Virus record (IMG/VR): IMGVR_UViG_3300027759_000046
Location: 62,001 to 126,000 of that record
Length of the DNA stretch: 64,000 bases
Reading direction: 5' to 3' (one strand)
Positions 245 to 60,006 of this stretch are shown here, one piece after another. The notes beneath the pieces were generated by a model. That model made no database searches. It was not told the origin of the DNA and was given only the letters and a program-made list of their open reading frames with translations. A program made the position numbers and the translations under genes. Position 1 is the first letter of the stretch. Each line of letters begins with the position of its first letter.

Positions 245-604
245 TTATTTAGGCATCTTTGCCATAGCTGGATCAACTTTCTTGTTGATAGCTTTACCTT
301 TGATAACAAGCTTAGAGATCTTAGGATCAACTTCTTTCTTAGAAGCAGTTCCACGACCCTTAGGCATATCGGCCATTTCAGGTTTCACCATTTTATTAGA
401 AGCAGAACCACGACCCTTAGGCATATCAGCCATTTCAGGTTTTACAGTTTTACTGATTGCTCTACCTTTTCCAACAGGAAGTGCAGACATCTCATCATCA
501 ACTTGTTTTGTAATTCTTTTGCCTTTAGCTGGAGCGCCTTTAGCAAGATCTTGATTCGTTTTCTTTTCAAAAAGATACTCTTCGTAGCTTAAAACTGATT
601 TCAT
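245..604 (-). CDS. Small basic repeat protein, putative internal head protein
   Basis: N-terminus MKSVLSYEEYLFE (CTS-like); about four KGR...KPEMADMP repeats; directly downstream of the capsid gene. Confidence 0.6.
   Translation of the reverse strand: MKSVLSYEEYLFEKKTNQDLAKGAPAKGKRITKQVDDEMSALPVGKGRAISKTVKPEMADMPKGRGSASNKMVKPEMADMPKGRGTASKKEVDPKISKLVIKGKAINKKVDPAMAKMPK
340..450. repeat. 57-nt tandem repeat inside the basic protein gene
   Basis: tagaagcag..ccacgacccttaggcatatc.gccatttcaggttt occurs twice, 57 nt apart. Confidence 0.8.
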
Positions 605-681
605 GTGAATTTTGTTTTTTTGTAATTTCTTTTTTGCTAATCCTAGCTAGGTTATTTATTAGTGAAAGTCGGCTAAAAAAG

Positions 682-708
682 AAAAGGCTCCCTTTTGAGG
701 AGCCTTTT
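682..708 (-). terminator. Intrinsic terminator after the major capsid gene
   Basis: AAAAGGCTCC/GGAGCCTTTT stem followed by a U-tract on the minus strand. Confidence 0.85.
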
Positions 709-730
709 ACTATGAATAATCTAGTTAAGA

Positions 731-2410
731 TTAAGCTGCGTATCCAGTTGAAGGAGCAACAGAACCAGTCAATACTCCTAGGCCAGTTACTTCCATAGTG
801 ATGTATTGTGTTTCTGGGTGCCATCCAGCTTCCGTGATAGCATAACGAGATTTCATACCAATTTTCGGAGAGAAAGTACCCTCTGCAATTGTTTGAAGAC
901 TCTCAGCCATGATATATGGAAGGAATTTAACACCTGGCTCTTCGTCAGCGCCTTTACGTCCGATGTGGATGCGGTTGTCGCTGAATTTCAAGTTAGGATC
1001 TACGTATACAGTTAAACCGTGTACTTTACCAGCTGGGTAAAGTTGACCAGGTCCTGAAGGAAGATCGTTATTGAATGGAGCAAAAGAGTAACCAGCAACG
1101 TCAGCAAGAGCTGAAGCTACACGGCCGTTAGTAACGATGTATGTACCAGCACCGAAACGACCTCTGTGATAAATCAAGTTAGCCATTTCAAGGATTTTAG
1201 TAACAACACGACGTTGTAGAGTTGAGATGTTTTCGAAACCTGAACCGATCGTAAGATCTAAGTTAACGATTCCAGCGCCTTCAACTGCTTCTAACGTAGT
1301 TTTATGAGTTTTACCTAAGTTAAATACTCTGTCAACTAATTTTTTGTTGATACCTTGTGCAAGTTCATTAACTGCTACGTTCTCTAACATAGAGATTACG
1401 TCGAAATTCCAAACTCGGTTAAGATCTTGGATTTGCTCAACAGTTGCAGAGATTGCTACTTGGTCTCCTTTTGCCTCAATGAATTTCGTAAACATACGAA
1501 GACCCATTTGACGGAATTTAGAAGCTTCAGCAACTTCACGAGTCATACCGTCGTAGTTAACTTGAGAACCAGTAGAACCTAAGAAAGGACCATCGAAATC
1601 AACGTCAGCTTCAGTTGTAGTTGAAGTGAAACCTGAAATGTGGTTTTCTAAAGCAGATACTAGAGCTGCAGTTTGAGTAGTCAAAGACTTAGTGTAAGCG
1701 TGAGAAGCACCATTAACTGTAATAGTTGTGAAAGTTTCACCGTTAGTTACGAAATCATTGATTGTCTTAGTCTCATCGCCAGTTGTGTTAACTACTTTAA
1801 ACATAGCTACTCCATCAATACGTGAGAATCCGATGAATGATAAGTTCAATACGTCTCCACCACCTAAATCGATCTTAGAAGTATCACCAGCTACGAAAGA
1901 AGCTAGAGTACCTGTAGAAAGAGTAGTAGTTTTAACGAAACCGTTGATTTTGATTACGAAAGGCTCGTATTGTTTGTCAACGTTACCACCTTGGTATACG
2001 TAATCCAAATAAGGTAAGAAACCTACTGGAGAATCCATAGGAACTACACCAACTAGATCGAAACCTACAGTTTTAGCAGCTACTTGAATAGCGATAGGTA
2101 ACAAGCTTGGGAATTTATCACCAGAACCAGCTACGTTATAGCTATTTTTTGCACCATTTGTGAATGGAGTCATTGAAGAAGTTGGAGCAGAGATTGCACC
2201 CATTGCAGATACTGAACCTGGTTGTTGTAAGAACAAACCTGGAGCAGTGCTCTCGTTTAATGAACCTGCGTTATCAAAGATTGCGTGGTTGTGAGCGTAA
2301 TCTACCAACCAAGGGCGAGATTGTACGTTTGCACCATAACCTTCTAATACTGGGGTCCAAGTTTCCGTAACTGAAGCGTCATTCAGTCTTTTGAAAATTT
2401 TTGTTGCCAT
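731..2410 (-). CDS. Major capsid protein, T4 gp23-like
   Basis: W.PVLE N-arm, SLNE|ST maturation site, VGVVPMDSPVG, KFLPY, F.PKIGMKSRY motifs. Confidence 0.93.
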   Translation of the reverse strand: MATKIFKRLNDASVTETWTPVLEGYGANVQSRPWLVDYAHNHAIFDNAGSLNESTAPGLFLQQPGSVSAMGAISAPTSSMTPFTNGAKNSYNVAGSGDKFPSLLPIAIQVAAKTVGFDLVGVVPMDSPVGFLPYLDYVYQGGNVDKQYEPFVIKINGFVKTTTLSTGTLASFVAGDTSKIDLGGGDVLNLSFIGFSRIDGVAMFKVVNTTGDETKTINDFVTNGETFTTITVNGASHAYTKSLTTQTAALVSALENHISGFTSTTTEADVDFDGPFLGSTGSQVNYDGMTREVAEASKFRQMGLRMFTKFIEAKGDQVAISATVEQIQDLNRVWNFDVISMLENVAVNELAQGINKKLVDRVFNLGKTHKTTLEAVEGAGIVNLDLTIGSGFENISTLQRRVVTKILEMANLIYHRGRFGAGTYIVTNGRVASALADVAGYSFAPFNNDLPSGPGQLYPAGKVHGLTVYVDPNLKFSDNRIHIGRKGADEEPGVKFLPYIMAESLQTIAEGTFSPKIGMKSRYAITEAGWHPETQYITMEVTGLGVLTGSVAPSTGYAA

Positions 2411-2428
2411 TTTATTAAAAATGTTTTT

Positions 2429-4411
2429 TTAGTTTTGTGCTCTTCTTTTGAGAGCGTCTAGATAGCTATTTGAATAACCTCTTAGACTTTCGTTTACTTG
2501 TACTAACGATATGTAGCCCTCTTTACCTTGGCTTTCGTTAATTGTTTGATTATTTATATTATTTGCTTGCGCAATTCTTTCATTTACTGTTCTAAGATCG
2601 CGAGAATCCCAGAATGCTTTAGCTTGATAAGGAGTGTTGATCACTTGAGTAGAAGCTTGAGCAGCCATCCAATTACGTTCAGCATCATTCATACTTTCAA
2701 ATACTGTTTTGTATTTTTCTGGCATGAAACGAACGTAAGCTGGAGTGTTTTCCGTTTGTTTATTCATTACTGATTCCATGATATTGATAACTTCACCTTC
2801 AGTAAAGAAGATAGCGCCTCTCATAGTTTCAACGATTGCTGTTTTAGTATCAGCATCCAAAGCATAGAATTTTTGCTTGTTAGATTCACTAAGAAGTTTC
2901 AAGAAAGGATATTTGTTTTCAAGAACTGCATTCGCTGAATTAGATTTGATATGAGATAAGATACCGTCAACTGCGTTAGCTAATTCATCAACTCCTGAAG
3001 CATCTGTAACTTCGTAGCTTGCACTTTCGTTAAGTTTCTTAACGTCAGATAACAATCTGCGAGCTTTGATATTTGTGTTTGGAGTAATCTTTTCATTCAT
3101 TGTTTCAGCGATGTACTCAGAATAAGCAATTCCTTTCTGTACGTTTTCGCCAAGATACTCAGAATATTTGATTGCTGCATCTAGGTTTTCAGCTAAGTAG
3201 TTTGCAAATTTAATACCTTTTTCAGCATTCTCTGCAACGTATTCAGCGTATTGAATTCCTTTGTCAACGTTCTGAGCTAAGTAGTTTGAGTAAGCAATAT
3301 TCTTCTCAACGTTTTCAGCAACATACTCGCCGTAATTGATAGATTGGTTAACTTTCTCTCCTAGATAATCAGAGTATTGAATGTTTTTCTCAACTTTTTC
3401 TGCTAAGTAATCACCGTAATCGATAACGTTGTTAACTTTTTCTGCAACATGCTCAGTATATCCAATACCTTTATTTAGCATGGTTGAAAGGTAGTTTGAA
3501 TACTCAACCATTTTTTCCATTTCACTTGCTAAGTAATTTACATACTCAACTAGTTTTCCAGTTTCTGGTGATTCATTGCTATTTTCATTAAGAGAGCGAA
3601 TTCCAGCGTTGTTTTTCGAAAGGTTTTCTTGAAGAGCATCGAATTTCTTCTTAACCAATTGCGAATACTGGTTCATTTCTTCTCTTGATACAAAGTCATT
3701 AGCCATTTGCTTATTATTATTTTGTTGTTTAGTGATTTCAGAATTATTTATTCTATAGATCTTTACAGAATCTTCAAATGAGAAGCTTTCTGATATATCT
3801 GTTAACTTATTTGTGATGGAAGTTGTCTTAATGCCGTCCAAAGACTCAAAAAGTACAGAAAAATTGTCCCTTAAGCTCTCAGAAACCTGAGTTAGGGAAG
3901 CTTGTGAGAATCCTGGTTCAGCAACGATATCGTAAGTAAAGATTTTTTGAATCTTAACGACTCCGCTCTCGTTTACGTTACCTGCTGCTCTTGATGAAGT
4001 TGAGATTGTACAACCTGACTCAACTAGAGTCTTTGCAATACGACCACATGGAGTATCAAGAACTTTAAGTTTAATACGAACAGTATTTGAAGGTTCGTCA
4101 TAAGTAAGAGCTTCAACCACGTGAGAAACGTTCTTTAGGGAAACGTCAAAACTTTGTGGATGGTCTAACTCTCCGAATAACTGACCCTTTTGGATCTTCT
4201 CATTTAGATATGAAAGATGAGGCAAGTACTCTTGCTTCTCATAGATACGATTGTTCTCGTTCTTTTGTCCAAAGACTGCACAAATACCCTCAAGGATAAT
4301 TGAGCCATCGTTTGATTTTGAAACGTTCAACGCTTCGTTAACTCGCTCGATGATGAATAATTGACTATCATCGAAGCCAGTCTTTAGTAAGTTTGTTTTA
4401 GCGCTAGTCAA
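2429..4411 (-). CDS. Prohead core protease (gp21-like) fused to a scaffold-like repeat region
   Basis: LEGICAV..KNENNRIY, GELDHP, SSRAAG, TYDIVAEPGF motifs; long helical C-terminal region; TTG start. Confidence 0.9.
   Translation of the reverse strand: MTSAKTNLLKTGFDDSQLFIIERVNEALNVSKSNDGSIILEGICAVFGQKNENNRIYEKQEYLPHLSYLNEKIQKGQLFGELDHPQSFDVSLKNVSHVVEALTYDEPSNTVRIKLKVLDTPCGRIAKTLVESGCTISTSSRAAGNVNESGVVKIQKIFTYDIVAEPGFSQASLTQVSESLRDNFSVLFESLDGIKTTSITNKLTDISESFSFEDSVKIYRINNSEITKQQNNNKQMANDFVSREEMNQYSQLVKKKFDALQENLSKNNAGIRSLNENSNESPETGKLVEYVNYLASEMEKMVEYSNYLSTMLNKGIGYTEHVAEKVNNVIDYGDYLAEKVEKNIQYSDYLGEKVNQSINYGEYVAENVEKNIAYSNYLAQNVDKGIQYAEYVAENAEKGIKFANYLAENLDAAIKYSEYLGENVQKGIAYSEYIAETMNEKITPNTNIKARRLLSDVKKLNESASYEVTDASGVDELANAVDGILSHIKSNSANAVLENKYPFLKLLSESNKQKFYALDADTKTAIVETMRGAIFFTEGEVINIMESVMNKQTENTPAYVRFMPEKYKTVFESMNDAERNWMAAQASTQVINTPYQAKAFWDSRDLRTVNERIAQANNINNQTINESQGKEGYISLVQVNESLRGYSNSYLDALKRRAQN
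3091..3553 (-). repeat. 11 tandem 14-aa repeats (xIxYxEYLAExxxK) in the protease-scaffold
   Basis: LVEYVNYLASEMEK through GIAYSEYIAETMNE, counted in the translation. Confidence 0.9.
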
Positions 4412-4477: not shown

Positions 4478-5356
4478 TTATTTATCAAAGCCTTTCAGTA
4501 ATTCTTTAAGCGTAGTTAACTCTTCTTCAGATAATTTAGATAGATCAGGTTTATTTACCTTGATCTCAAATATAAAAGAGCCGTTTGTCCCAGCTGGCGT
4601 AAATAATCCATGGTCAGGAATTCTAACTCTAATATCTGATAAACTATTTACAGTTAGTGATTTTATGCGATATTTTTTACCCAGGGGATTTTCCAAGATA
4701 ATTTCGTCTGAAAATAAGACATCTCTGAGCTCAACATTAGTTGTCTGAACAATATCAAAGTCTTTAAGTTGCAGCCCCTGTAGATCTATAATTATTCTAA
4801 CTATTAGATCCCCAGATACGCTATTTTGCCTAGCCTTTCCAAAAAAGTCAGACCGTTCAAAGACCTGGCTAGAACCGGCTCCCTTAATTCTAAGAATAAC
4901 TGCATCAACTGATCCGCCAATCTTTGTGATAGGGTATGCAGTCTTACTCAAGTTAACCTTTATCTTATAAGACTTATTATCAAATGATGATTTATCAAGG
5001 CCAGATTTTGAAATTTGATATTCTACTGTGAATTCAACGCCTGCCATTAGTTCGCTTAGCGAAAACTTACGGTCCCTTACGATATTTAGATGAGACGGAT
5101 CAAATCCATTAAAAGAAAAGTCATGAAATGTTGTGAAATATTCGTTAACTGATCCGCCATTTAACGTCCGATCATAGTCGGCTCTTTTATTTGAATCTCC
5201 GAGTGTTTCGTAAGCTTCAACTATTTTCTTAAAGTGCTCTTCTCCTTCCGGGTTTCGGTCGGGGTGATACTGTTTAGTAAGTTTGCGGTACGCCTTTTTA
5301 ATTTCATCAGAATCAGCATTCTCTTGAATCTCAAGGACTTCATAATAATTTTTCAA
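4478..5356 (-). CDS. dnaJ: DnaJ/CbpA-like co-chaperone (J domain plus C-terminal domain, no Zn finger)
   Basis: [33 protein letters not shown]. Confidence 0.9.
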
Positions 5357-7234: not shown

Positions 7235-7989
7235 TGACCAACGTAATAATTATCCCAGTTCACAATCAAGTATTTCACCTAAAGGCTTGTATTGAAAGTA
7301 TTAAGAAACATACAAAGAATTATTCTCTAATAATAGTCGACGACGGCTCAACTGATTATGAGACGGTTAAATGGATCGATGATTTACCTGATAAGATATT
7401 GATTCGTCATACTAAAGCAATGGGATTCTCTAAAGCATGTAATGACGGAATCGACTATGCTATAAAATATCTAGACTTTAACATTTTATGTTTGCTAAAT
7501 AGCGATACCGTAATTGTTACGCCAGACTGGTTAGATAAAATGGAGACAGAATTCAGTAAATTTGATAAGCCTGGGGTTGCAAGTGTTGTTAGCGATAATG
7601 CAACAACTCAAACAATACACAATCCTGCGAAATATTTAACTCAAATCGATACTAAACCGACCTTTAAGTCCCAACTAATTCATGGATTCTGTTATTTCAT
7701 GAGCCGCGAAGTCATCTTAACTCTCGGCAGATTTGATGGAGACCTATTTCCACATTACGGCAGTGAAGACGATTATTCGTTAAAATGTATAAGAAACGGG
7801 TTCACAAATTTCGTAGTCGGCAGCATCTTTATTAAACACAATGCTTCGACTAGCTATTCAGCGGAACGCCGAGAAGCCTTAATTGCAAAAAGCGTGCCGG
7901 CTCTATTAACCAGATGGACTCGGCAGTACGTTAGCGAATGCATAAACAGAAGTCTTCACATTCAAAAAATGCTAAACGAAAATGTATGA
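7234..7989 (+). CDS. GT2 family glycosyltransferase
   Basis: IIIPVHN, IVDDGSTD, GFSKACNDG, LLNSDT, GSEDDYSL. Confidence 0.9.
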   Translation: MTNVIIIPVHNQVFHLKACIESIKKHTKNYSLIIVDDGSTDYETVKWIDDLPDKILIRHTKAMGFSKACNDGIDYAIKYLDFNILCLLNSDTVIVTPDWLDKMETEFSKFDKPGVASVVSDNATTQTIHNPAKYLTQIDTKPTFKSQLIHGFCYFMSREVILTLGRFDGDLFPHYGSEDDYSLKCIRNGFTNFVVGSIFIKHNASTSYSAERREALIAKSVPALLTRWTRQYVSECINRSLHIQKMLNENV

Positions 7990-8635: not shown

Positions 8636-8644
8636 TAATTTAAT

Positions 8645-9334: not shown

Positions 9335-9335
9335 G

Positions 9336-16507: not shown

Positions 16508-16954
16508 TTAAGAGTATGGATCTAGGTCCGGGTTTGGAATTTTATGCCAGCGCCTTTCGCTGCCGCTTCCAGCCAATTGAACCTCTTCGGCTGTGTCCTT
16601 GATGAATCGTAGAGCCTCTTCGTAATCACCGTCTGTTAACAGGTCGTCCACCATTTGAGCAGCAGAGTCTGATAACTTAACTCGATAGACTACTGGGTGA
16701 CGTTGATCATTGGCTCTGCATCGCAGCGTCATCAGGCTTAGGTTTCCGCCAAATGCTTTTTTCTCTGGATCGTCCTTGCCGCTAATATCGCTAAGACCTA
16801 GCCCATGTAATCTGTCCAAGTTTTGTGATCTAGCTAGGGAAGGTTCCTTAACAAAAGATTCGATTCCTTTGCAGTCAGCAATGCCGTAATACCAATGGGA
16901 TTCTCCAGTACCGCGTGACTCGTTAAATGATTTAAATGAATTTGCGTATTTCAT
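16508..16954 (-). CDS. Putative head cargo protein (CTS-like N-terminus)
   Basis: MKYANSFKSFNE; RLHGLGLS motif; GATAAATA upstream. Confidence 0.55.
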   Translation of the reverse strand: MKYANSFKSFNESRGTGESHWYYGIADCKGIESFVKEPSLARSQNLDRLHGLGLSDISGKDDPEKKAFGGNLSLMTLRCRANDQRHPVVYRVKLSDSAAQMVDDLLTDGDYEEALRFIKDTAEEVQLAGSGSERRWHKIPNPDLDPYS

Positions 16955-17518: not shown

Positions 17519-18157
17519 TTATTTAGGAGCAGTAGTGGGTGCAACAACTAGTGCCTGCTTAGCCGCAACTGTTGGAACTATGAAAGTTCTAACGAAGTAC
17601 GCCCAATATGTAATTTGAGTTTTACCAGTTGTGTCAGCTGGATCAGCGATCATTGTATTCCATTTTGCATTTTCCAATGATTCTTTGGCATACGGTAAAA
17701 AAATTTCCTGAACTGGTGAATTGCTTGCGCCATTATAGATTGGAGTCAATTGAGAACTTGCTTGATTAATGAAGGCTAGCGCATTCTCTTTTGGAAAAGC
17801 ATTATTGATTGATCTAGGCTGTCTTCCTAGATACGCCATTGCCAAGAAAATTGATTGAACAATGTTAGCACGCTCTTTGAACCAAGCAACTTGAGAGTTG
17901 GCAACCCTTGTATTATCAGGATCAGACGCAGTTTCCGCTTTCACCCACGGTGCAGGCTTTGCAGCGTTTGCGAATTGTGGTACTGAGATATAGCTATCAA
18001 AGTCAGCTTGACTCTTAAATGATAATTTATAGGTAAGCCCGTCTGTTGCTTTAAATCCTGTGCCAGGCGCAGCAACTGCTGCATCAGCCTCTTCTGCTAA
18101 ATTCAGGTCAGTCAAATTCTCATTTAACCACTGTTTGTATCCTTTAATTAGTTGCAT
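17519..18157 (-). CDS. Putative head cargo protein; N-terminus similar to 18763..19377
   Basis: MQLIKGYKQWLNE then an Ala/Pro linker. Confidence 0.6.
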   Translation of the reverse strand: MQLIKGYKQWLNENLTDLNLAEEADAAVAAPGTGFKATDGLTYKLSFKSQADFDSYISVPQFANAAKPAPWVKAETASDPDNTRVANSQVAWFKERANIVQSIFLAMAYLGRQPRSINNAFPKENALAFINQASSQLTPIYNGASNSPVQEIFLPYAKESLENAKWNTMIADPADTTGKTQITYWAYFVRTFIVPTVAAKQALVVAPTTAPK

Positions 18158-18762: not shown

Positions 18763-19377
18763 CTATCCCTGAGCAGGTGGAGTAACTGGAGGTGTAGTAG
18801 AAACCCAAGGCATACCTGCCTTAACGCACTGTTCTCTCCAAATCTTTGGCCAATTAGTATCCCATTCAGCTACCCATTTCTTACCGCTTTGGCGATCAGA
18901 CGAATCTAGCATGCTGTACATGTTTTTAACAATCGTAACATCTACGTTATCCGATCCGCCAGTTGCTAACGCATTCATTTGAGCAAGTTTCATTGGACTC
19001 TTTAATCCACGTAGGGCATGTATCTCCAATGCAGCAGTTACTGAATCTACGATACTCCCGCCAAACGTTTTTTTAGTAGGATTGTTCGGATCTCTCGTAA
19101 GAGATATTGATCCTTGACTAGGCATAATCTTTTTAAGAGCAACTCGATTTGAGTTCTCATCGTTACTGGAGCCAGCGTCAGTAATTGAACCATCAGTTGC
19201 ATTCCAATATTGATATTTTGAATGAGCTAAATCGTCAGCGAATGGATATTGGTAAGCAACTCCATTTGATTTTAGAGTATAGCCTTCAGGCTTTGCACCT
19301 GGACCAGAAGTTCCAGCCACCGGAGCCGCTTGTGCATCCTCATTGAGCCATTGTGTGTATCTTTTAATAATTGCCAT
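18763..19377 (-). CDS. Putative head cargo protein
   Basis: MAIIKRYTQWLNE then an Ala/Pro linker. Confidence 0.6.
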   Translation of the reverse strand: MAIIKRYTQWLNEDAQAAPVAGTSGPGAKPEGYTLKSNGVAYQYPFADDLAHSKYQYWNATDGSITDAGSSNDENSNRVALKKIMPSQGSISLTRDPNNPTKKTFGGSIVDSVTAALEIHALRGLKSPMKLAQMNALATGGSDNVDVTIVKNMYSMLDSSDRQSGKKWVAEWDTNWPKIWREQCVKAGMPWVSTTPPVTPPAQG

Positions 19378-20009: not shown

Positions 20010-20557
20010 TACCAGAATCCAGGATAAGTTTTACCACCCCATAGATGCGCGTATCGGTTGATACGGCAGGCCCAGTAACCTGCTTTTGTTTTATCTTTCT
20101 TAAGATGACATTGATGGCGAGCGGCAAAGGATGCGCGGGCTTTAGGATTGCTAACCTTTGCAGTTAGGCCTCCATGAACATCGCCGAATGAAATCTTTTT
20201 AATATTACCAGTGTGAGGATTCTTTACGAATACGTGATACTTCTTGGCTCCTCCACGTTGAGGATAATTTAATTTTACTGACTTTCCGTGATATTCAGAT
20301 TCGTTAATCTCTTCAATTGGAAAATCTAACGGAACGATTCGACCCTCAAAAACGGCAGTTTTACCAAGATCAGTTTCAATAAAGAGAATCTTATCGACTC
20401 CCGTAAAATTCATTTCGCCCGCATCAAATCGATTACGCGCCTCCACTAATAACTGAATATGCGCATTGCTACCGGGTCTAAAAATAGACTCAGCAACCGA
20501 CATTCCACGATCAAGATGATACTGTAGATTTTCAGAAATTAGAGTAGGGTTTACCAT
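20009..20557 (-). CDS. Conserved hypothetical phage protein with basic C-terminal module
   Basis: Likely start MVNPTLISE; INE then KKYHVFVK..KISFGD..ARASFAARHQC..AGYWAC. Confidence 0.65.
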   Translation of the reverse strand: MVNPTLISENLQYHLDRGMSVAESIFRPGSNAHIQLLVEARNRFDAGEMNFTGVDKILFIETDLGKTAVFEGRIVPLDFPIEEINESEYHGKSVKLNYPQRGGAKKYHVFVKNPHTGNIKKISFGDVHGGLTAKVSNPKARASFAARHQCHLKKDKTKAGYWACRINRYAHLWGGKTYPGFW

Positions 20558-21003
20558 GCTTCGTTCATTGGAGTAATTTGGCCACCACATTCGCAAGTCA
20601 TGTCTTCATTACATTCTTGTGATTCGTAAGTCATATTACACTCATTGCAAGAGTATAAACCTTCAGCCATTTCGTCGATTTCCTCTCCGAATTTTTTAAT
20701 TGGGCCTTCTGCTTCAGCTTCCGGTGCTCCATTTAATTCATTCATAAGAAAATCAGCAACCTCTTCGATATCGTCTTTCGATGTTGCAATATGATCGGCT
20801 GCCCAATCATGGCCGTTGTGAAGTAGTTGATTAACTTGAGTCTCGTCCATTTCCAACATTATATCAATTAGTCTCTTAATTGTTTTAAGATTACCAAAGA
20901 ACATGTAATGATCAACCTCTTCAGAACCAGCTTGCGCCATTTCAGGATTAGTCATTTTAGGATCTTGTTCAAATGCTTCAAACGTTTTTACTAAATTTTT
21001 CAT
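20551..21003 (-). CDS. Putative head protein with C-terminal Cys cluster
   Basis: MKNLVKTFEAFE; CNEC..CxC. Confidence 0.55.
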   Translation of the reverse strand: MKNLVKTFEAFEQDPKMTNPEMAQAGSEEVDHYMFFGNLKTIKRLIDIMLEMDETQVNQLLHNGHDWAADHIATSKDDIEEVADFLMNELNGAPEAEAEGPIKKFGEEIDEMAEGLYSCNECNMTYESQECNEDMTCECGGQITPMNEAW

Positions 21004-26165: not shown

Positions 26166-26744
26166 TTAGTCTAATGAACCGTAATCGCCTCTACTCATTG
26201 CTGCTGCAAATTCTCTGTCGGAGTGTGAATCCTTAGTGATATTGAAGCGAACGGCATCGGCTGCGAGTTCTTGATTTTGTTTTAAAAATTGAATAAGTGC
26301 AAGTGTATCGATATCTTGGTATTCGCCAGATCCTCCAAATTCTACAAGTTGTTTCTCTAATCCTCTTACTTCTGGAATTTCAAAAAGCCAAATTCTGAAA
26401 GTGACGATTTCTCCATGAGACGCTGATCTTTCTGACATCTCGGTTAGATGGTTTACTATTTGCTCGAGTGCATCAGCTTGGTCAAGAGGTCTTTCCCAAA
26501 CTTTCCATTCTTTACCTTCACGATTTATATTTACTGAAGTAGACGTGCCTGACCCAGTCGGTACTGAAATTGACATTAGATTTGGGCATAATTCCATTAT
26601 CTCAGCTAGATCACCTGCAAAATGTTCAATCGTTTCGCCACGTAATCCGTGATCAGTTGCCAGGCCCTTGTTCTTTAGCCAGTTCAGGCGCTCTCGTCTA
26701 GCGGATTCAGATATGAAATCGGTAAAGCCTTTAAGATTTTTCAT
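26166..26744 (-). CDS. Putative head cargo protein
   Basis: MKNLKGFTDFISE; WLKNKGLA motif. Confidence 0.55.
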   Translation of the reverse strand: MKNLKGFTDFISESARRERLNWLKNKGLATDHGLRGETIEHFAGDLAEIMELCPNLMSISVPTGSGTSTSVNINREGKEWKVWERPLDQADALEQIVNHLTEMSERSASHGEIVTFRIWLFEIPEVRGLEKQLVEFGGSGEYQDIDTLALIQFLKQNQELAADAVRFNITKDSHSDREFAAAMSRGDYGSLD

Positions 26745-30523: not shown

Positions 30524-31309
30524 TTATCTTTCTTGAATTTCTTCGACTGCCCATTCTGTAAAAAGCTTTTGTGCAGTCTGTGCAAATTTATTAGGCCTTT
30601 TGCTAATCTCGTTTAAATCATTCCAAATTTGTTCAGCTTTAATCTTTTCTTTTTGTAATTCTTCGCGAATGTTGTCTGCGTCAGTCTTAAACTGTGCAAG
30701 CTCATCAGGGACGTCCGCTAGGCCCAACTTAACAAGTCTTAAAAATCTTGGATCATGTGCAATTCTAATTAATTCCGCCCATTCCTCTTCATCGTCTCTT
30801 GCCTCAGTTTTAGTATCATGATATGTCATTAGTTCGTCTTCGATCGAATTAACAAAATCTTCGCCGGTTGTATCTGGTACAATAATTAACCAGCCACCGC
30901 TATTGCCGCCCCAACCGGTATTGTCAATCCACGAATAGTACTCTTGAATATCTTCTTGAAAAAATTCTCTCTGGTCTTGAATCCAACTCCACCACATGCT
31001 ATCAAGCTCATCATCACTTAATTCGTCTTCAGTCATTCCAACTGCCTGTCTAATTGTCTCAAAGTCTGGCCACGTATGAATTTTTGCATCGATTGCAAAA
31101 TGACCTTCTCGAATATTGCGGCTCTCTCTATTCCACCAATACTCGTTTTCAAGTTCTCCCCACATGCGTTCAACGTCGTCCATTAGTTCAGGAATCCCTT
31201 CTTCGAAATAAAAGTCTCCATAGTCTCGGCCATAGTCTCTTGATAGAGTCGTCAGAACCTCATTCCATCTGCGTGCTTCAGTAATAAATTGTGAGAATGT
31301 TTTTACCAT
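30524..31309 (-). CDS. Putative head cargo protein, acidic
   Basis: MVKTFSQFITE; RLVKLGLA motif. Confidence 0.6.
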   Translation of the reverse strand: MVKTFSQFITEARRWNEVLTTLSRDYGRDYGDFYFEEGIPELMDDVERMWGELENEYWWNRESRNIREGHFAIDAKIHTWPDFETIRQAVGMTEDELSDDELDSMWWSWIQDQREFFQEDIQEYYSWIDNTGWGGNSGGWLIIVPDTTGEDFVNSIEDELMTYHDTKTEARDDEEEWAELIRIAHDPRFLRLVKLGLADVPDELAQFKTDADNIREELQKEKIKAEQIWNDLNEISKRPNKFAQTAQKLFTEWAVEEIQER

Positions 31310-36104: not shown

Positions 36105-37793
36105 ATGGCAGGATTCTTAGACAGTAACCCAATGAGATCATTAAGATCTAGACTCACTGAATTGAGCAAATTTGGGCAGAAATATGACGATCTACTCGTT
36201 AAAAACTCACAAGCAATCGGTTTTATTGAGGGTCAAATGCAACAAGCCGGTTCAGGATTAGGTAGCGATCTAATGAGAGCTACTCTGGCCTTATCTGATA
36301 CAACATCAGCTCTAAAGACCAAATCTATTGCATTCTTTCAAATGGATTACGTGTCCAAACGAGAAAGACTTCGTGATATTGCATCAAACGGCGAAATTGA
36401 ATTTGTACTTGAGACTATTACTGACGACAGTATCGTATTTGATGATGATAACCGCTTTTGTTACGCAAATGACCTAGTCGGAGAAATTCAGTACATGGGT
36501 CAAAACAAGAAACAACGACTTGAATTTCAAGAAAAGGTTCTAAACAAATATCAAGATACTTTTCAAAATATCTACAGTAAATGGGGCTTTGATCAAGGAA
36601 TTTCAGCATGGCAGTACTTCTATCAATGGTTAATTGAAGGTCACTTGGCCTTTGAGATAATTTACGATGACTTGTTAAAACCTACTCAGATTATCGGCTT
36701 TAAAGAATTGGATCCAGCGACTCTCTATCCAGAGATGAAGAAAGATGCAGGTGGATCATTAGTTCTACAATGGCAACAAAAAGATCCTCTGTCTAAAACA
36801 ACTAGAACTTTATCAGATTCTCAAATCATCTATATTTCATACTCAAATCACATGAGAACCAAACGAGTTAGTTTCGTTGAGAGACTTGTTCGTTCATTTA
36901 ATATGTTGAGAATCATTGAACACTCTAAAGTTATTTGGCACACAATGCACGCACCAATTCGTCTTGTTACAACTGTACCAATCGGAACCAAGTCAATGCA
37001 AAAGGCAAAGGAAGACGTTAGGGAATTTACCAATACTCTTAAGGAAGATATTTCATTTGATGGAGACTCTGGTGAATTAAAAGTTGACGGAAAGCCAAAT
37101 ATCTTGTTCTATAAGAATTATGTTGTTCCAGTAAATGATCAACAGCAACAGGTTAAAATTGAGCCATTGGAATACTCTGGACCAAACTTAGCCGGTTCAG
37201 AATTATTGAAATACTTCCATGAGAAGTTAAAAATGGACTCTAAAATTCCTGGGACCAGATTTGGTGAAGGTGGTGGAGCATTCACACTTAACGCAGAAGG
37301 TATTTCAAGAGAAGAGATTCGATATAATAAATTCATTCAACGTTTACGTTCAGCATTCAAAGAGTTAATCACAAAGCCTCTTTACTTGCAAATGTGCTTA
37401 GACATGAAAGAATTACAAAACGATCCTAAATTCGCAAACGCAGTCGGTCTTAACTGGTACGATGATAACGTATTTGAAGAACTTAAAGATCAAGATCTTA
37501 TTAACAAACGTCTTGCTACAGTTAACGCTCTTAAAGCAGTTGTTGATGATGCAAATAAACCATACTTCTCAACAGAATTCTTGATTCGTGAGTACTTAAA
37601 AATGAGCGATGAAGATATCCAAAAGAATAAGGATTATCAAGCGGTTCAGATGGGAGAAGCTGAAGAGGCTAAGGGCGGAGCCGGTGGAGCCGGTGCTCCT
37701 GGCGGAGGTGGTGGAGCTGCTGCTCCTGGCGCGCCCGGTGAGGAAGGCGGCGGAGAATTTAAGACAGAATTAGGAGCCAAAGGCCAACTTTAA
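36105..37793 (+). CDS. Portal protein, T4 gp20-like
   Basis: EIEFVLETITDDSIV, WLIEGHLAFE, KMDSKIPGTR, REEIRYNKFIQRLR. Confidence 0.92.
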   Translation: MAGFLDSNPMRSLRSRLTELSKFGQKYDDLLVKNSQAIGFIEGQMQQAGSGLGSDLMRATLALSDTTSALKTKSIAFFQMDYVSKRERLRDIASNGEIEFVLETITDDSIVFDDDNRFCYANDLVGEIQYMGQNKKQRLEFQEKVLNKYQDTFQNIYSKWGFDQGISAWQYFYQWLIEGHLAFEIIYDDLLKPTQIIGFKELDPATLYPEMKKDAGGSLVLQWQQKDPLSKTTRTLSDSQIIYISYSNHMRTKRVSFVERLVRSFNMLRIIEHSKVIWHTMHAPIRLVTTVPIGTKSMQKAKEDVREFTNTLKEDISFDGDSGELKVDGKPNILFYKNYVVPVNDQQQQVKIEPLEYSGPNLAGSELLKYFHEKLKMDSKIPGTRFGEGGGAFTLNAEGISREEIRYNKFIQRLRSAFKELITKPLYLQMCLDMKELQNDPKFANAVGLNWYDDNVFEELKDQDLINKRLATVNALKAVVDDANKPYFSTEFLIREYLKMSDEDIQKNKDYQAVQMGEAEEAKGGAGGAGAPGGGGGAAAPGAPGEEGGGEFKTELGAKGQL

Positions 37794-43634: not shown

Positions 43635-44015
43635 TTAAACTGCTTTTTGTGCAGTCTGTGCATCAGTTGTTTTCTGAGCATCCATTTTCTTAGATAGGTC
43701 TAATAATTTACTATCTAAATCTAGTTTCTTAGCATCGTAGTCAACCGCTTTTGGGTCCAGTTTCTTAAGTTCAGCATTAAGCTTATCAACTTCAACTTGT
43801 ATAGCTAAAGAGGCTGTAGATTCATCAACTTTCACAGTTTTTGAATAATCAGGCTCATTTGTATCTAACGGAGTTAAATCAGCTTTCTTTACTTGATCAA
43901 TTGTTTTCTCCTTTTTTACTGGATCTGCTGGTTTTACTGCTAATGCATGCTTCTTAGGCTCAACTAGAGTATTGCCATTTTTAAATTCGTCGAACTTTAA
44001 AAGTCTATTCTTCAT
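43635..44015 (-). CDS. Putative head protein, charged
   Basis: MKNRLLKFDEF CTS-like N-terminus. Confidence 0.5.
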   Translation of the reverse strand: MKNRLLKFDEFKNGNTLVEPKKHALAVKPADPVKKEKTIDQVKKADLTPLDTNEPDYSKTVKVDESTASLAIQVEVDKLNAELKKLDPKAVDYDAKKLDLDSKLLDLSKKMDAQKTTDAQTAQKAV

Positions 44016-45438: not shown

Positions 45439-45443
45439 TAATA

Positions 45444-46508
45444 TTATACCTTTATTTTTTGAGAAGCGGTCATCATGCACTCCATTAAGTACTGGTGACA
45501 TTCATTTAAGTAAGATTCGTAGTTCTGAGTCTCGTCTGGTGTCATATCGTGTTTGTGAGCTTCATGAATAAGAACTTCTTCACAAATTCTCTTGATCGCC
45601 TGTTTTGCGCTATCTGATAAGCCTGGCACGTAACTTTCTGGCATTGCTGACCAACACTCATTTAAGAATTGATCGAATGAACCGGATACTCGACCTTCTG
45701 CGAGTTTTTGGTCGTATGCATGAAACGGCACTGATGCGCCTGGATGTATAGTATTGATTGTGTAGCCATGCTCTCTGCTAGTGTATCTGTCCCAGCTAAT
45801 ACCTGTAACATCGTCTAGTGGAATAATTTCACCATTGTCTGCGGTAATTTCTCCAGTCCTTAGATCTAACTGATTAGTTGGATTTGATACCTTATATTGT
45901 TCGCGATACGCATTGAACGTAATCGGTTTCTTTGGACCGTCTTCCCAGTCCTTAATTAGATGAGAGAACACACGGTTATAGTAATTAGGGTCATTACGTT
46001 TCTCTCGGTCAGTCTGCATTGGCGTTTTATTGTAAATTGAATGACTTGGTGCACCGCTTGCTGAGTCAACTTCAGTTGCCTCAATTGAATTGTCCTCAAT
46101 GCTCTCAATCTCCTCGTCTCCACCGAATTTGCTAACTTCTACCTGAATTCGGTATTCAACTCCTTCATGTTCGCCAACTAACTCCGCGTAACCCATACCT
46201 TCGTCCCATTCAGTATACTCAGTGTCTAAATCAAAATCAACAATAGCCTCTTCTCCCCAAACTGTTAGAATTTTTATGAAAGTTTCGCTGTCCGTGATTC
46301 TACGCACTTTGTAACCAGCTGCTTGAATTTCAGCCAGGTCCTCTGGCTTATTACCCATGATTTTGATAACACCAGGTTTACCGGGTTCAGCTAAACCTAG
46401 TCCTTTAAGCCTTTTAAAATTGTCTTGATGTGATTTTGGATTGGCTCCCATGGAGGTAGCCTCTTTATCCATGAATTGAGGAAGTCTTCTTTTGCCGAAT
46501 TTGCCCAT
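45444..46508 (-). CDS. Hypothetical acidic protein, putative head cargo
   Basis: RLKGLGLA motif; internal SFDQFLNE and YESYLNE; TATAAATA upstream. Confidence 0.55.
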   Translation of the reverse strand: MGKFGKRRLPQFMDKEATSMGANPKSHQDNFKRLKGLGLAEPGKPGVIKIMGNKPEDLAEIQAAGYKVRRITDSETFIKILTVWGEEAIVDFDLDTEYTEWDEGMGYAELVGEHEGVEYRIQVEVSKFGGDEEIESIEDNSIEATEVDSASGAPSHSIYNKTPMQTDREKRNDPNYYNRVFSHLIKDWEDGPKKPITFNAYREQYKVSNPTNQLDLRTGEITADNGEIIPLDDVTGISWDRYTSREHGYTINTIHPGASVPFHAYDQKLAEGRVSGSFDQFLNECWSAMPESYVPGLSDSAKQAIKRICEEVLIHEAHKHDMTPDETQNYESYLNECHQYLMECMMTASQKIKV

Positions 46509-54448: not shown

Positions 54449-54715
54449 TTAGGTATTGGATTTTTTGCTCTTTTTGGGATTAGCGCCAAACCAATATGGG
54501 TTTCCGCTTTGAGCAACTTGAGCCTGTTGCATAAATTGAGTGTAGCCTTGGGATTCTTTAGTTGATGCAGCTTTCCACGCTTTTTCTTTAGGATAGCCTT
54601 TGCTTCCAGGCTTTGCAGGAGATTCGCCGCGCTTTCTTTTAGCCTGAACATTATCCCAAAGTCCAGGCTTTTTCTTTTCAGTAATAAATGTTGTAAATGA
54701 TTTAACGTGATTCAT
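54449..54715 (-). CDS. Small putative head protein with basic module
   Basis: MNHVKSFTTFITE then KKPGLWDNVQAKRKRG..PGSKGYP..AW. Confidence 0.65.
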   Translation of the reverse strand: MNHVKSFTTFITEKKKPGLWDNVQAKRKRGESPAKPGSKGYPKEKAWKAASTKESQGYTQFMQQAQVAQSGNPYWFGANPKKSKKSNT

Positions 54716-55141: not shown

Positions 55142-55441
55142 TTACATTAATTCTGCGTTATCGGAGTCAGTAGGTTCTTCTTCGATAGCTGGTTGTTCTT
55201 GATTGTCTGCCGGCTCTTCTGGGTTGTCCGCAGGTTCGTCCATCATCATAAGATTAGGTTCTTCGCCCTGTGGCATTTCGTTGCCCATTGGCTCTTGTGC
55301 TGGTGCAGGCAATTCCAATTGACCTTGACCCATGTCAGGTCCGTCCATGTGAATGTTAGCATCAACCTCAGGTTGATTGTCCAATCCTTGTGTTACGAAA
55401 TCTTCAAAGCTAAGAATTCTACTTTTGTTTAGATTATCCAT
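55142..55441 (-). CDS. Acidic low-complexity protein, putative head protein
   Basis: RILSFEDF then an E/P/D-rich tail; GATAAATA upstream. Confidence 0.55.
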   Translation of the reverse strand: MDNLNKSRILSFEDFVTQGLDNQPEVDANIHMDGPDMGQGQLELPAPAQEPMGNEMPQGEEPNLMMMDEPADNPEEPADNQEQPAIEEEPTDSDNAELM

Positions 55442-56805: not shown

Positions 56806-56809
56806 TAAT

Positions 56810-56844: not shown

Positions 56845-56868
56845 GTAAGGTTTTAGTTTTCCATCACA

Positions 56869-56940: not shown

Positions 56941-56974
56941 GTTAATAATATACTATAAAATTCCTTTTCGGTTT

Positions 56975-56982
56975 TATTTATA
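56975..56982 (-). promoter_or_regulatory. Late promoter TATAAATA (plus a TATATT -10-like element at 56947..56952) upstream of the leader/tRNA operon
   Basis: Exact motif; TATATT lies 6 nt before the leader ATG. Confidence 0.65.
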
Positions 56983-57026
56983 TTAAACTTATTTCTTATC
57001 AGAGTTTTGAATCATAATATATGTAG

Positions 57027-57683
57027 TTAAATTTTTTGTAGCATTAAATATGCGTCATCCGTAAATTGGCCCTTTCGTACAACCGCATTATACCAGCTAA
57101 AATCAATCACTCGATATTTAGCATGGTTACCGGCCCGTCGGATTCGTTGAGTTCCATGAATCTCATTATTCCATGGACTCTCATTCGTAATCAGTAAATC
57201 CAATAAATCAAGTCTATTCCAGATACCAAATTGATGATTCAATAAATACGGAGACTCTTCAGCAAATTCTAGAATCTGATGACCTTCAAACAAACTGTGA
57301 TCTTTAAATATTCCGAATTCTGGTTTATTTGGAGGGCGAGACGTGATATAGAAAGCGGAGAGATTTTCATCTTTTAAATCAGTAAAACACTTATTAAAAA
57401 TGTCTAATTCTAATTTACGATATGGCCAAAAATCTTCTTGCATGTATGCGATATACGGAGTATCAATCGCGTTTAAGATAGTAATTAGTCGATTGCTCCA
57501 CTCGCCTGATCCAGTTTTTAAATTGATCCAGCCATTCTGCTCTACTGATAATTCTTCAGTACAAAAATATTTGCGACAGTCAATTAAGTTTCCATCAGTA
57601 AATTTAAAAAATGGATCCCAACAGAAACTGTATTTATCGCAAGTGTGTAATATTAGACTAATTTCAGTCATGCAATAATTCAT
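57027..57683 (-). CDS. Putative GT-A fold glycosyltransferase
   Basis: LILHTCDKYSFCW, WSNRL, YMQEDFW, SPWNNE. Confidence 0.6.
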   Translation of the reverse strand: MNYCMTEISLILHTCDKYSFCWDPFFKFTDGNLIDCRKYFCTEELSVEQNGWINLKTGSGEWSNRLITILNAIDTPYIAYMQEDFWPYRKLELDIFNKCFTDLKDENLSAFYITSRPPNKPEFGIFKDHSLFEGHQILEFAEESPYLLNHQFGIWNRLDLLDLLITNESPWNNEIHGTQRIRRAGNHAKYRVIDFSWYNAVVRKGQFTDDAYLMLQKI

Positions 57684-58410
57684 TTTTTTGCCAAGGTCTA
57701 GTTATGTAACCTGCATAAGGATCTAACGCAGATCCGATATCAATTTGAGTTATATCTGAATACCTAAAATACAAATTACTTATTAGCATCTTTCCGGCAA
57801 TCGTACATGCATATAAAATAACTGGGTCCTCAGTATTTTCAATCAAGTCTATCACTTGATTCTCTAAAGTATCGTAGCTTTCCCAAACATTCTCAGGTTC
57901 AGTACTCACATATTTACAGCTCTTTGAAACTATTGATAATTTGCCTAAATATATTGGACCAACGATAATTAAATTTCGGTTTTTAAATGATTCAAATAGA
58001 TCAAGTAGTCCATAATTAGCATATATATGCATAAAAATTACAGAGTTATTCTTCAAGAATTCTGGAGAAATTTCATCATAGAAATTTTGTAATTCTAATG
58101 GAAAATTATTTGAAATTAGCTCGCAGCATGGAGTATTATTCTCAATGCCTACAATTAGATTAGAATCACTTATCTTTAATATTGGGAGAATCGATTTCTT
58201 AAAAAGTTCTTCGTATTTCGGTAGAACTGGTGTTCCTCCTAATCCCAACAAGACTTTTAAGTCACCGTCTCCTAACCGAATCAACGAAAAGTGTTTATTC
58301 GTTTGAATATTTTCAACTATTCTATTGTAAATTAATTCGCTGGAATGATTCTCTATAGATGGGGCCCAATAATTCCAAGCTTTTATTTTATCTTGGTGAA
58401 ATCTCTGCAT
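57664..58410 (-). CDS. GT-D fold-like glycosyltransferase, paralog of 8645..9334
   Basis: FSLIRLGDGD; IDIGSALDPYAG. Confidence 0.6.
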   Translation of the reverse strand: MQRFHQDKIKAWNYWAPSIENHSSELIYNRIVENIQTNKHFSLIRLGDGDLKVLLGLGGTPVLPKYEELFKKSILPILKISDSNLIVGIENNTPCCELISNNFPLELQNFYDEISPEFLKNNSVIFMHIYANYGLLDLFESFKNRNLIIVGPIYLGKLSIVSKSCKYVSTEPENVWESYDTLENQVIDLIENTEDPVILYACTIAGKMLISNLYFRYSDITQIDIGSALDPYAGYITRPWQKNELLHD

Positions 58411-59612
58411 TAATCGTTGGATTTTCCCAATTTTCGCTTTACTGCTTCTCTTGTTTTTTCCATCTTTGCCGCGTAACTAGGATTTTTCTTTTTATTGAAT
58501 GCAATTTGCTGATTTAGTGAACCTGATATTTTTTGCAGGTTCTTGCCTCTAGTCTTAATTAACCAATCAGCTAGCGCATTTACTCCAAGTTCTTTGAATT
58601 TACCGTTTGCGTCCGGTGCATTAGAATCGTGCCATTCAAGGCGTTTCTTTTCAGATACTGTTGCATTGTCAGCGATTGCTGCATCTATCATTTGTTCAAG
58701 TTGAGCATCTGTGAAACCTAGCTTTAACATCGGCTCCCTAAAAGAGTACCGTAATTTGCTAGTAAGTCTCTGCTTAATTTGCTCTGGAGTAGTTGCGTAA
58801 TATCGAGTGTCTCTGTGGTTTACGAAAACTTGACATACGGCCTTAACTCGACGAACCATCTTCATTGGCTCTTTAATTAACTGTGCCATTCTTGAAGCTT
58901 TACCCTCATCGAATCCATAGCTATTAAATAGACCAGCGGCTCGCATAATATCCTTTTCTTCAGGTTGAACGTTTTCAACATCAATAAAATTGTTGCTCGC
59001 AAGACCTAGGGCCTTTAGCCGATTATAATTACGTTGCTGATTTTCACGAACTCCTTCCAGACTCTGGAATTTATCTAAGATTGAGTCGATTTGCTCGTCA
59101 TTTTGACCGGTTCTAGCTGAGTGAGCTAGTGCTGATATACCTGCACCCATTTCTCTATATTCTGGACTTAACGTAGCATCCGGATCTTTTCGGCTTATTG
59201 AAATAATATCAATTAGAATGTCCTGTAGGAAATTTACAACTGCATCCGGGTTAACACTAGACATTTCAGAATCAAGATCATCATCACCGTCTAGAATATT
59301 AACGTATTGAGCAACTTGATCCGCGATTTGTCTTAATTCGCCTTGTGTATCTGGCATTTCAGCATTAACCGAAGACCTCTTGATTTTCTTTAGCGCAAAG
59401 ACTGGAACCTTTGCAATAGTTTCACGGCTACCTGTTAATTTAACTCTTGCGAATTCACCATCAATTGATAGTAGTTGGCCAGGACCGCGATACGATTCAA
59501 CCCAATCTCCGGGTTCTAATTCTGGATTGTCCTCGTTCTTTGCGAACTCTGCATCTGGATCCTGTAAGAATTTATCAAGATCAAAATCTTCAAATAATTT
59601 AACGTGTTTCAT
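58410..59612 (-). CDS. Modular putative head cargo protein
   Basis: MKHVKLFEDF; SH3-like segment; RLKALGLA; basic C-terminal module. Confidence 0.55.
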   Translation of the reverse strand: MKHVKLFEDFDLDKFLQDPDAEFAKNEDNPELEPGDWVESYRGPGQLLSIDGEFARVKLTGSRETIAKVPVFALKKIKRSSVNAEMPDTQGELRQIADQVAQYVNILDGDDDLDSEMSSVNPDAVVNFLQDILIDIISISRKDPDATLSPEYREMGAGISALAHSARTGQNDEQIDSILDKFQSLEGVRENQQRNYNRLKALGLASNNFIDVENVQPEEKDIMRAAGLFNSYGFDEGKASRMAQLIKEPMKMVRRVKAVCQVFVNHRDTRYYATTPEQIKQRLTSKLRYSFREPMLKLGFTDAQLEQMIDAAIADNATVSEKKRLEWHDSNAPDANGKFKELGVNALADWLIKTRGKNLQKISGSLNQQIAFNKKKNPSYAAKMEKTREAVKRKLGKSND

Positions 59613-60006
59613 TGTATTTGATAATCAGTTCGCCTAGAACCTCAATTTTTCCAACGATTCTTTGAAAGTCCATCTGTTTTAGTGAAATTGCTTTAGTAGA
59701 GCCGTCAATTGATTTTAGGTGTTCCGATAATTCTTTTTTGGCCTCAGCTAGGTTAAATTTGCCGGCTGCTGCTTTTTGATAGTATGGAAGTTTAACTTTA
59801 AAATGCTGATAGGTTAGGAGAGCATCTCCACCCTTTTCCTTGGCATTCTGTGCAATCTTTGAGGCTCCGCCCAAACGATTCTTAGCGAATTCTTCAAGAG
59901 TCTCAACCTTCTTGGCTTCATGCAGAGCATTGAAATCCATGAATGTCGTGGCAAGCTTGGTCTTCGGTAAAGTTTTTTGGTGTAGTTCCCAGTTTATGAT
60001 TGACAT
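59599..60006 (-). CDS. Putative head protein
   Basis: TTFMDFNALHE; TATAAATA at 60026..60033. Confidence 0.55.
   Translation of the reverse strand: MSIINWELHQKTLPKTKLATTFMDFNALHEAKKVETLEEFAKNRLGGASKIAQNAKEKGGDALLTYQHFKVKLPYYQKAAAGKFNLAEAKKELSEHLKSIDGSTKAISLKQMDFQRIVGKIEVLGELIIKYNETR

Follow-up and report, generated by a model that had tools for sequence, protein, structure and literature searches.

For the carriage of proteins inside a phage head, the capsid-targeting sequence (CTS) of bacteriophage T4 is the classic signal, borne by a handful of proteins, and we know of no binding partner identified for it in the prohead core. In T-even phages the internal proteins form a diverse set with the CTS as their sole common feature (PMC3012670), and suppressor analysis of the T4 signal, taken for comparison here as M-K-T-Y-Q-E-F-I-A-E, assigns targeting mainly to residues 4 and 7 and processing to residues 8 and 10, with an Asp at position 10 blocking processing and leaving targeting in place (PMC9026906). 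Here we describe a 64-kb stretch of DNA, hereafter the window, which covers bases 62001-126000 of a 253,137-bp virus contig from IMG/VR (IMGVR_UViG_3300027759_000046, rated 94% complete), the genome of an uncultured T4-like jumbo phage in which a short N-terminal tag of CTS-like pattern recurs on many different proteins. We judge, with a probability of roughly 70%, that this tag is a T4-type capsid-targeting and maturation signal, expanded to ~30-35 proteins per genome and used across a large clade of uncultured jumbo phages. A preliminary description of the window had proposed the T4 reading, which is supported by the agreement of N-terminal position, the four T4 positions, a gp21-family protease, unrelated mature parts and late-like promoters.

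Other systems share parts of this design. In the phiKZ-like giant phages (phiKZ, 201phi2-1, SPN3US) a gp21-related protease cuts the propeptides of head proteins after Glu, and these propeptides presumably target their proteins into the prohead (PMC5694885). As here, the phages are of jumbo size, their head proteins are of tens of kinds, and a T4-related prohead protease cuts after Glu; their propeptides, however, are mostly longer than 100 residues and lack a common short consensus, whereas the tag is short, uniform and plain to the eye, and they differ further in a cut motif with Ser, Ala or Gly at P3 and in a scaffold counterpart that is unconfirmed. Fusions of protease and scaffold are familiar from gpO of P2 and the nested C and Nu3 genes of lambda, and the locus described here is alike in that its head maturation protease and scaffold function share a reading frame beside the capsid gene; in those phages we know neither of a 14-residue repeat array mimicking a cargo tag nor of the loading of a large cargo. 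The cargo-loading peptides of encapsulins are likewise short and terminal and load unrelated cargo into an HK97-fold shell. As a rule, however, they stand at the C-terminus, attach directly to the shell protein and stay uncleaved, and their likeness to the tag is one of working principle only, not of descent.

The tag was defined strictly as [FYW]-x-x-[FYW]-[ILVM]-x-E within the first 25 residues, and loosely as a start in which the two aromatic residues are kept and the cleavage half is altered. Gene calling yielded 296 genes, coding 90% of the contig, and 24 of them carry a strict N-terminal tag where composition predicts 0.85-1.0 (Poisson p 1e-24 to 1e-26); near the N-terminus the strict motif occurs per position at ~10 times its rate elsewhere in proteins. 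A hidden Markov model (HMM) of the motif gave its 22 best scores to 22 different proteins, all at residues 1-15. One of the 24, at 128774-129022 of the contig, is without the M-K start and lies behind the other of the two promoter-like motifs described below; it probably fits the pattern by chance. The consensus is M-K-x-[LIV]-K-x-[FY]-x-Q-[FW]-[ILV]-[NTS]-E, amphipathic and ending in Glu. In 23 strict members the first aromatic position (0) is Phe 18 times, Tyr four times and Trp once, the second (+3) Phe 16, Trp five and Tyr two times, and position +4 Ile 12, Leu nine and Val two times, with Glu at +6 in all; [ILV]-N-E is the most frequent ending. The closing Glu falls at residue 10-16; for the first aromatic residue, 21 of 22 strict members have it between residues 4 and 8. 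About 11 more proteins have a loose tag with a basic start and both aromatic residues, followed by Asp in place of Glu, a shorter spacer, or phi-N-E a few residues downstream. The whole set comes to ~30-35 proteins, ~11% of the genes or about one in nine.

The similarity of these proteins ends with the tag. When 34 of them were compared by blastp after removal of the first 22 residues, one similar pair was found at E 1e-3, and a paralogous family was rejected as the source of the shared start, the mature parts being unrelated save for that pair. At the conserved positions Phe, Glu and Asn are each written with both of their codons, and Ile and Leu with many of theirs, in roughly genome-wide proportions; synonymous codons are therefore free, the constraint lies on the peptide and not on DNA or mRNA, and a nucleotide-level element was rejected on the same ground. 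The relative G002 (270 kb; capsid protein 75% and protease 71% identical) has 20 strict N-terminal tags, and orthologous pairs with it retain the tag down to 31% identity. That lowest case is gene 30524-31309, whose orthologue keeps T-F-S-Q-F-I-L-E and whose homologues in a large protein database number only seven, all close (77-88% identical); the orthologue of 245-604 keeps its tag at 53% identity, and in the more distant G004 one orthologous pair keeps it at 35%. Several loose-tag proteins have orthologues with a canonical tag in G002, which makes the loose form a decayed or variant version of the one tag. G002 lacks a homologue for about half of the tagged proteins; by these alignments a stable tag is carried by a fast-changing set of proteins.

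The comparison with T4, where the CTS precedes IPI, IPII, IPIII and Alt and is removed by gp21, can be drawn position by position. Both signals lie at the extreme N-terminus and are 10-19 residues long, a propeptide in T4 and a putative one here, and Tyr4, Phe7, Ile8 and Glu10 of T4 have the exact spacing and chemistry of the four conserved positions of the tag (0, +3, +4, +6). Both stand on otherwise unrelated proteins in a phage with a gp21-fold protease, promoter motifs here suggest a late gene context like that of T4, and the maturation site of T4 gp23, F-G-S-F-L-T-E, also fits the tag pattern. The tag differs in being ~3 residues longer, with a Lys two residues ahead of the first aromatic residue, and in its use on ~30-35 proteins per genome rather than a handful, with a mostly acidic cargo. 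The T4 protease gp21 is a stand-alone protein of 212 aa and its scaffold gp22 has a separate gene and no such repeats, whereas here protease and scaffold are a 660-residue fusion with tandem copies of the tag core; T4 gp23 and the capsid protein here are ~26% identical over the aligning part only. Tag and CTS share pattern and spacing, the tag is too short for a test of homology, and the likeness may reflect convergence on the same protease and core.

That the genome encodes a gp21-family prohead protease is established by Pfam, PHROG and fold together. The protein scores 33-35 bits against Peptidase_S77 (cut-off 27) and E 4e-37 against phrog_207, 'head maturation protease'; its top PDB sequence match is T4 gp21, and its AlphaFold model superposes on the T4 gp21 structure 5JBL with a TM of 0.76 (E 4e-10). 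His84 and Ser139/140 are invariant across nine sequences, lie within stretches aligned to 5JBL and are from this conservation the inferred catalytic residues. The gene lies immediately upstream of the capsid gene, and the C-terminal ~430 residues of its product are mostly helical in a low-confidence model. Within them each unit of a tandem array contains the tag core, aromatic-x-x-aromatic-aliphatic-x-Glu, and the array is modelled, again at low confidence, as a single long helix. Tandem Repeats Finder found no DNA-level repeats in this region, so the repeats exist at the protein level only; they are kept in all relatives examined, including the distant G006, G008, G009 and G010, and are degenerate in the uncultured huge phage LR756500. 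In the protease-scaffold protein phi-N-E occurs nine times against an expectation of 0.6, with one triplet invariant across the alignment, and in the capsid protein L-N-E at residues 51-53 is the last Glu before the conserved core and a candidate propeptide cut. Since scaffold sites, capsid L-N-E and the commonest tag ending agree, phi-N-E is probably the preferred cut site of the protease.

Promoter evidence consists of counts of sequence motifs, with the nearest promoter-like motif traced upstream through tightly packed operons. The most enriched upstream 8-mer, ATAAATAA, stands before 55 genes with a peak 21-30 nt ahead of the start codon. Of the 34 tagged genes 17 have ATAAATA in their upstream 80 nt, compared with 42 of the 262 others (p 2e-5), which agrees with the late motif reported upstream of many of these genes in the preliminary description; under the operon rule 32 of 34 tagged genes, against 110 of 262 others, have it as their nearest promoter-like motif (p 3e-9). 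It also precedes the protease-capsid operon, and by these motifs the tagged genes appear to sit, along with the head genes, behind late-like promoters. A second promoter-like motif, GTATAAT(A), stands before 27 genes, two of them tagged (window examples at 5444, 51018 and 54205). A homologue of the T4 late sigma factor gp55 was matched weakly at 25504-25857 of the contig (E 2.7e-4), and the replication proteins of the window (a polymerase part, primase and helicases) are untagged.

The tag extends well beyond this genome. Relatives with 41-77% capsid identity have 14-27 strict tags each, with 27 in G006 (234 kb, capsid 41%) and 14 in G009 over its first 160 kb. In IMG/VR at least 120 stretches matched a DNA pattern that encodes M-K, 2-5 codons and F-x-Q-F-I-N-E; among the matches listed, 88 of 131 have a 12-base in-frame spacer and the most frequent start is M-K-H-I-K-L-F-E-Q-F-I-N-E, and five of five large contigs tested among them encode a capsid protein 41-56% identical to that of the window. 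The best GenBank matches of the capsid protein are uncultured huge phages (LR756500, 38% identity), followed by Prevotella Lak megaphages (32%) and Tenacibaculum jumbo phages (28%), and more than 2,000 T4-like phages match it less strongly than these. A DNA-level GenBank search gave no near match to the contig, GenBank searches found no cultured member of the clade, and a literature search for the tag strings found no paper. In the megaphage Lak-B5 no protease-scaffold match was found within 20 kb of the capsid gene (code 11). In LR756500 (462 kb, L119) His frequently takes the place of the second aromatic residue in the scaffold repeats (Y-x-E-H-[IL]-A-E), and a nearby open reading frame (ORF) at ~32495, plus strand, starts M-K-F-L-E-T-Y-E-N-H-I-E-E; from these sequences the His variants hint that tag and repeat may change together. 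A Shine-Dalgarno-like 4-mer precedes only 7 of the 296 genes and leaders are 48% A, which would presumably fit a Bacteroidota-type host.

What the tagged proteins do can be named for a minority. A Pfam scan of 30 tagged proteins of this genome left 25 without a family at E 0.01, and the first ten in the window have neither a Pfam nor a PHROG family. Those with a known domain all lie outside the window and comprise a phage lysozyme, CHAP, VanY/M15, a peptidoglycan-binding domain and a nucleotidyltransferase; among 97 tagged proteins from five genomes there are further single hits to NUDIX, SET, cytidylyltransferase, HAD hydrolase, ATP-grasp and Acb1-like (anti-CBASS) proteins, the last in G006 at 31 bits (cut-off 27). 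The gene of that protein (L255:5918-6457, minus strand; G006:105915-106457) adjoins the orthologue of the tagged gene 54449-54715 and a gene for a tagged ATP-grasp-like protein. Homologues of a tagged cytidylyltransferase in cultured Stenotrophomonas phages align from residue ~25 only, that is, without the tag. At 129297-130123 of the contig (G000:C1, minus strand), outside the window, an untagged SLT-domain protein with a signal-anchor-like start lies beside an untagged 107-aa membrane protein, likely an endolysin/holin lysis pair; because this separate untagged lysis enzyme exists, the tagged wall hydrolases would be additional, as for enzymes that act at entry. The tagged proteins had earlier been cast as candidate early anti-defence or host-takeover effectors: for anti-defence the basis is one Acb1-like protein, in the relative G006, and with cell-wall hydrolases making up most of the cargo identifiable here, a part in entry is as well indicated as one in anti-defence. 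Two small proteins in the window, 245-604 and 54449-54715, have very basic mature parts, with a pI of 10.3 for the former. No hydrophobic stretch of 19 residues occurs in any tagged protein, and a Sec-type signal peptide was rejected for the tag, which has no hydrophobic core, is amphipathic and has Glu at its end.

If the tag is a T4-type signal, the tagged proteins would be made late, along with the head proteins, and the amphipathic tag helix would bring each of them, via its two aromatic residues, into a prohead core formed by the protease-scaffold fusion, each of whose 14-residue repeats contains the tag core. After shell assembly the gp21-like protease would cut after the Glu of phi-x-E, releasing the cargo from its tag, and would chop the scaffold repeats into short peptides, while ~30-35 unrelated proteins would remain in the head with the DNA and exit at infection. 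We infer binding to the core, cleavage, retention in the head and ejection by analogy with T4; observed are the motif, its N-terminal place and protein-level conservation, the genes for protease and scaffold, and the late-like promoter context. More tentatively, and with doubt outweighing confidence, the tag could be one unit of the scaffold's own repeat, the cargo docking its N-terminal helix in the repeat array and one protease dissolving both.

Several observations weigh against a targeting signal of this kind. Most mature parts are acidic, unlike the basic internal proteins of T4, and the canonical cut site is absent in the ~11 loose members. The Tenacibaculum phage PTm1 (28% capsid identity), the nearest cultured relative, has an orthologue annotated 'prohead core scaffolding protein and protease', yet the repeats in its protease-scaffold are of another kind and the 50 kb examined showed no such tags, which disqualifies it as an experimental proxy. 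The scaffold was modelled at low confidence (pLDDT 53). Tags are Phe-rich and scaffold repeats Tyr-rich, so their likeness is one of pattern, not of sequence; a profile of the repeats ranks three tags first in the proteome, a weak and partly circular result, the repeats having been chosen with the same pattern. A complex prediction of the protease-scaffold (with alignment) and residues 1-40 of the 26166-26744 protein scored 0.00, which speaks neither for nor against binding. For this phage and its clade, finally, the basis consists entirely of sequence and predicted structures.

Four other explanations were weighed, each of which we consider less likely than a capsid-targeting signal. The tag might be a propeptide that offers the prohead protease an enlarged site to recognise and cut and has no role in targeting, the proteins reaching the head by other means. 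The phi-x-E half does recur in capsid L-N-E and at many scaffold sites, and T4 gp23 is cut at F-G-S-F-L-T-E, which fits the pattern; however, both aromatic residues persist in the ~11 members that have no cut site, the aromatic positions serve targeting rather than processing in T4 (PMC9026906), and cleavage alone needs no fixed distance from the initiator Met, so that we regard this as rather improbable. To a similar degree we doubt, though a little more firmly, that the tagged proteins are assembly or scaffold accessories of the prohead core that are degraded or expelled before DNA packaging and never injected. Such a role would suit the resemblance of tag and scaffold repeats, the mostly acidic cargo (poor company for packed DNA) and the fragmentation of the T4 core proteins gp22, gp67 and gp68 by gp21, but lysozyme, CHAP, VanY, nucleotidyltransferase, NUDIX, Acb1-like and HAD hydrolase domains are ill-suited as scaffold parts, and the quick turnover of the tagged set among relatives fits accessory cargo better.

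It is very improbable that the tag addresses its proteins elsewhere, either to export into the envelope or to a phage ClpB-like ATPase or J-domain protein. Four tagged proteins have peptidoglycan-related domains, and the window encodes both a double-AAA Clp-type ATPase and, beside the protease gene, a protein with a J-domain-like start; yet the tag is without a hydrophobic core, a membrane-like segment is found in no tagged protein, true signal-peptide-like N-termini in the window look quite different, most tagged proteins have no envelope-related domain, and the match to the T4 positions and to the scaffold repeats would be left unexplained. Least credible of all is a functionless shared start, either a leftover of common descent or a translated nucleotide element such as a translation start region or a recombination cassette. 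With A-rich leaders and without Shine-Dalgarno sites, start regions could face unusual constraint, but the synonymous codons at conserved residues follow genome-wide usage, similarity stops where the tag does, and the tag survives in orthologues that are only 31% identical and in relatives whose capsid proteins are 41% identical.

The CTS system itself is known; what draws attention is the scale of its probable expansion and the link between scaffold repeat and tag. The four T4 CTS positions recur over a very large evolutionary distance, on ~11% of the genes of a jumbo phage, and the tag core as tandem repeats in the protease-scaffold suggests a concrete docking partner. If the tag works as in T4, the proteins carried into the cell could be listed through it from sequence alone, dozens of orphan proteins would become candidates for effectors of the first minute, and a short loading tag for foreign proteins would be available in phages of non-enterobacterial hosts. 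Should the docking idea also be true, the CTS would gain a physical docking partner and the tag would mark, in metagenomes and by sequence only, the clade's whole head-delivered protein set, which would then be readable as cell-wall enzymes, nucleotide enzymes, Acb1-like anti-defence proteins and many orphans.

Within the window (Table 1) the twelve N-termini quoted in the preliminary description all read as quoted at minus-strand starts; as members of the tagged set six are strict and five loose, and the one starting at 60006, with its motif from residue 21 and no homologue found in the relatives compared, is doubtful. Gene 245-604 lies directly downstream of the major capsid gene, a tagged homologue of 54449-54715 is present in the distant G006, and the tag of 58410-59612 retains both aromatic residues and has Asp instead of Glu at the cut position. 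A Protein Atlas search with the 30524-31309 and 58410-59612 proteins gave no usable lead.

Table 1. Tagged genes and head-module features of the window (window coordinates; last column, upstream motif or other basis)
Position	Strand	Feature	Basis
245..604	-	tagged, strict (S-Y-E-E-Y-L-F-E, Glu residue 13), 119 aa	ATAAATA at -55
731..2410	-	major capsid protein, gp23-like	homology
2429..4411	-	prohead protease (gp21/Peptidase_S77 fold, ~residues 24-220) fused to helical scaffold-like C-terminal part, 660 aa	ATAAATA at -27
3077..3559	-	14-residue repeat I-x-Y-x-[ED]-Y-[LVI]-[AG]-E-[NK]-V-x-K-x, 8-11 copies in tandem (protease-scaffold residues ~285-445)	protein sequence
16508..16954	-	tagged, loose (S-F-K-S-F-N-E), 148 aa	ATAAATA at -29
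17519..18157	-	tagged, strict (G-Y-K-Q-W-L-N-E), 212 aa, no Pfam/PHROG family	ATAAATA at -34
18763..19377	-	tagged, strict (R-Y-T-Q-W-L-N-E), 204 aa, no Pfam/PHROG family	ATAAATA at -29
20551..21003	-	tagged, loose (T-F-E-A-F-E-Q-D), 150 aa	N-terminus read
26166..26744	-	tagged, strict (G-F-T-D-F-I-S-E), 192 aa	ATAAATA at -24
30524..31309	-	tagged, strict (T-F-S-Q-F-I-T-E), 261 aa, acidic	N-terminus read
36105..37793	+	portal protein (head module context)	phrog_213, E 1.6e-61
43635..44015	-	tagged, loose (K-F-D-E-F-K-N-G), 126 aa	ATAAATA at -27
45444..46508	-	N-terminally untagged; internal strict copies F-D-Q-F-L-N-E (residue 278) and Y-E-S-Y-L-N-E (residue 330)	ATAAATA at -32
54449..54715	-	tagged, strict (S-F-T-T-F-I-T-E), 88 aa, very basic, pI 10.3	N-terminus read
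55142..55441	-	tagged, loose (L-S-F-E-D-F-V-T-Q), 99 aa	ATAAATA at -29
58410..59612	-	tagged, loose (M-K-H-V-K-L-F-E-D-F-D-L-D), 400 aa	N-terminus read
59599..60006	-	doubtful member (T-F-M-D-F-N-A-L-H-E from residue 21), 135 aa	N-terminus read

Internal or C-terminal copies of the motif had also been reported in five ORFs, with mixed outcome. They hold for 45444-46508, where both are conserved in the G002 orthologue (46% identical), and in part for two others: the RNA-ligase fusion 23209-26160 has two internal copies at which relatives lose the Glu or the pattern, and the internal matches of 44035-45501 are loose only. By the strict and loose definitions 21003-22535 and 31309-31698 contain no internal copy, and the claim falls for these two. 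The 23209-26160 product (minus strand, 983 aa) combines an N-terminal RNA-ligase domain with a weak cytidylyltransferase-like stretch. The product of 21003-22535 (minus strand) begins M-F-L-K-V-K-R-F and has L-L-A-E at residues 14-17, where its G002 orthologue has L-I-L-E; this conserved start ending in phi-x-E may be another kind of propeptide. An untagged helicase at 60025-61761 (minus strand, phrog_2488) starts M-S-K-L-K-A-E-F-E-Q-F-V-K-G, which to the eye resembles the tag's targeting half with the Glu missing.

Among the neighbouring genes, 4478-5356 (minus strand), directly upstream of the protease-scaffold gene, encodes a 292-aa protein with a J-domain-like start (Y-Y-E-V-L, then H-P-D) that suggests, on this sequence, a DnaJ-like co-chaperone of the phage next to its head genes; every PHROG family it matches is of unknown function. 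A phage-encoded 658-aa double-AAA Clp-type ATPase (AAA_2, AAA_lid_9, ClpB_D2-small, UVR motif) lies at 49018-50994 (minus strand). The ORF at 32354-33811 (plus strand) aligns with DNA polymerase profiles over nothing but their C-terminal part, positions 499-838 of 856, and the polymerase gene therefore seems split. Two small proteins with classical signal-peptide-like starts, 17045-17449 and 18251-18694 (both plus strand), are interleaved with three tagged genes on the opposite strand, and the plus-strand gene blocks 5444-10163 and 37820-42527 encode N-termini that resemble, by eye from the translations, glycosyltransferases, nucleotidyl-sugar enzymes and an epimerase.

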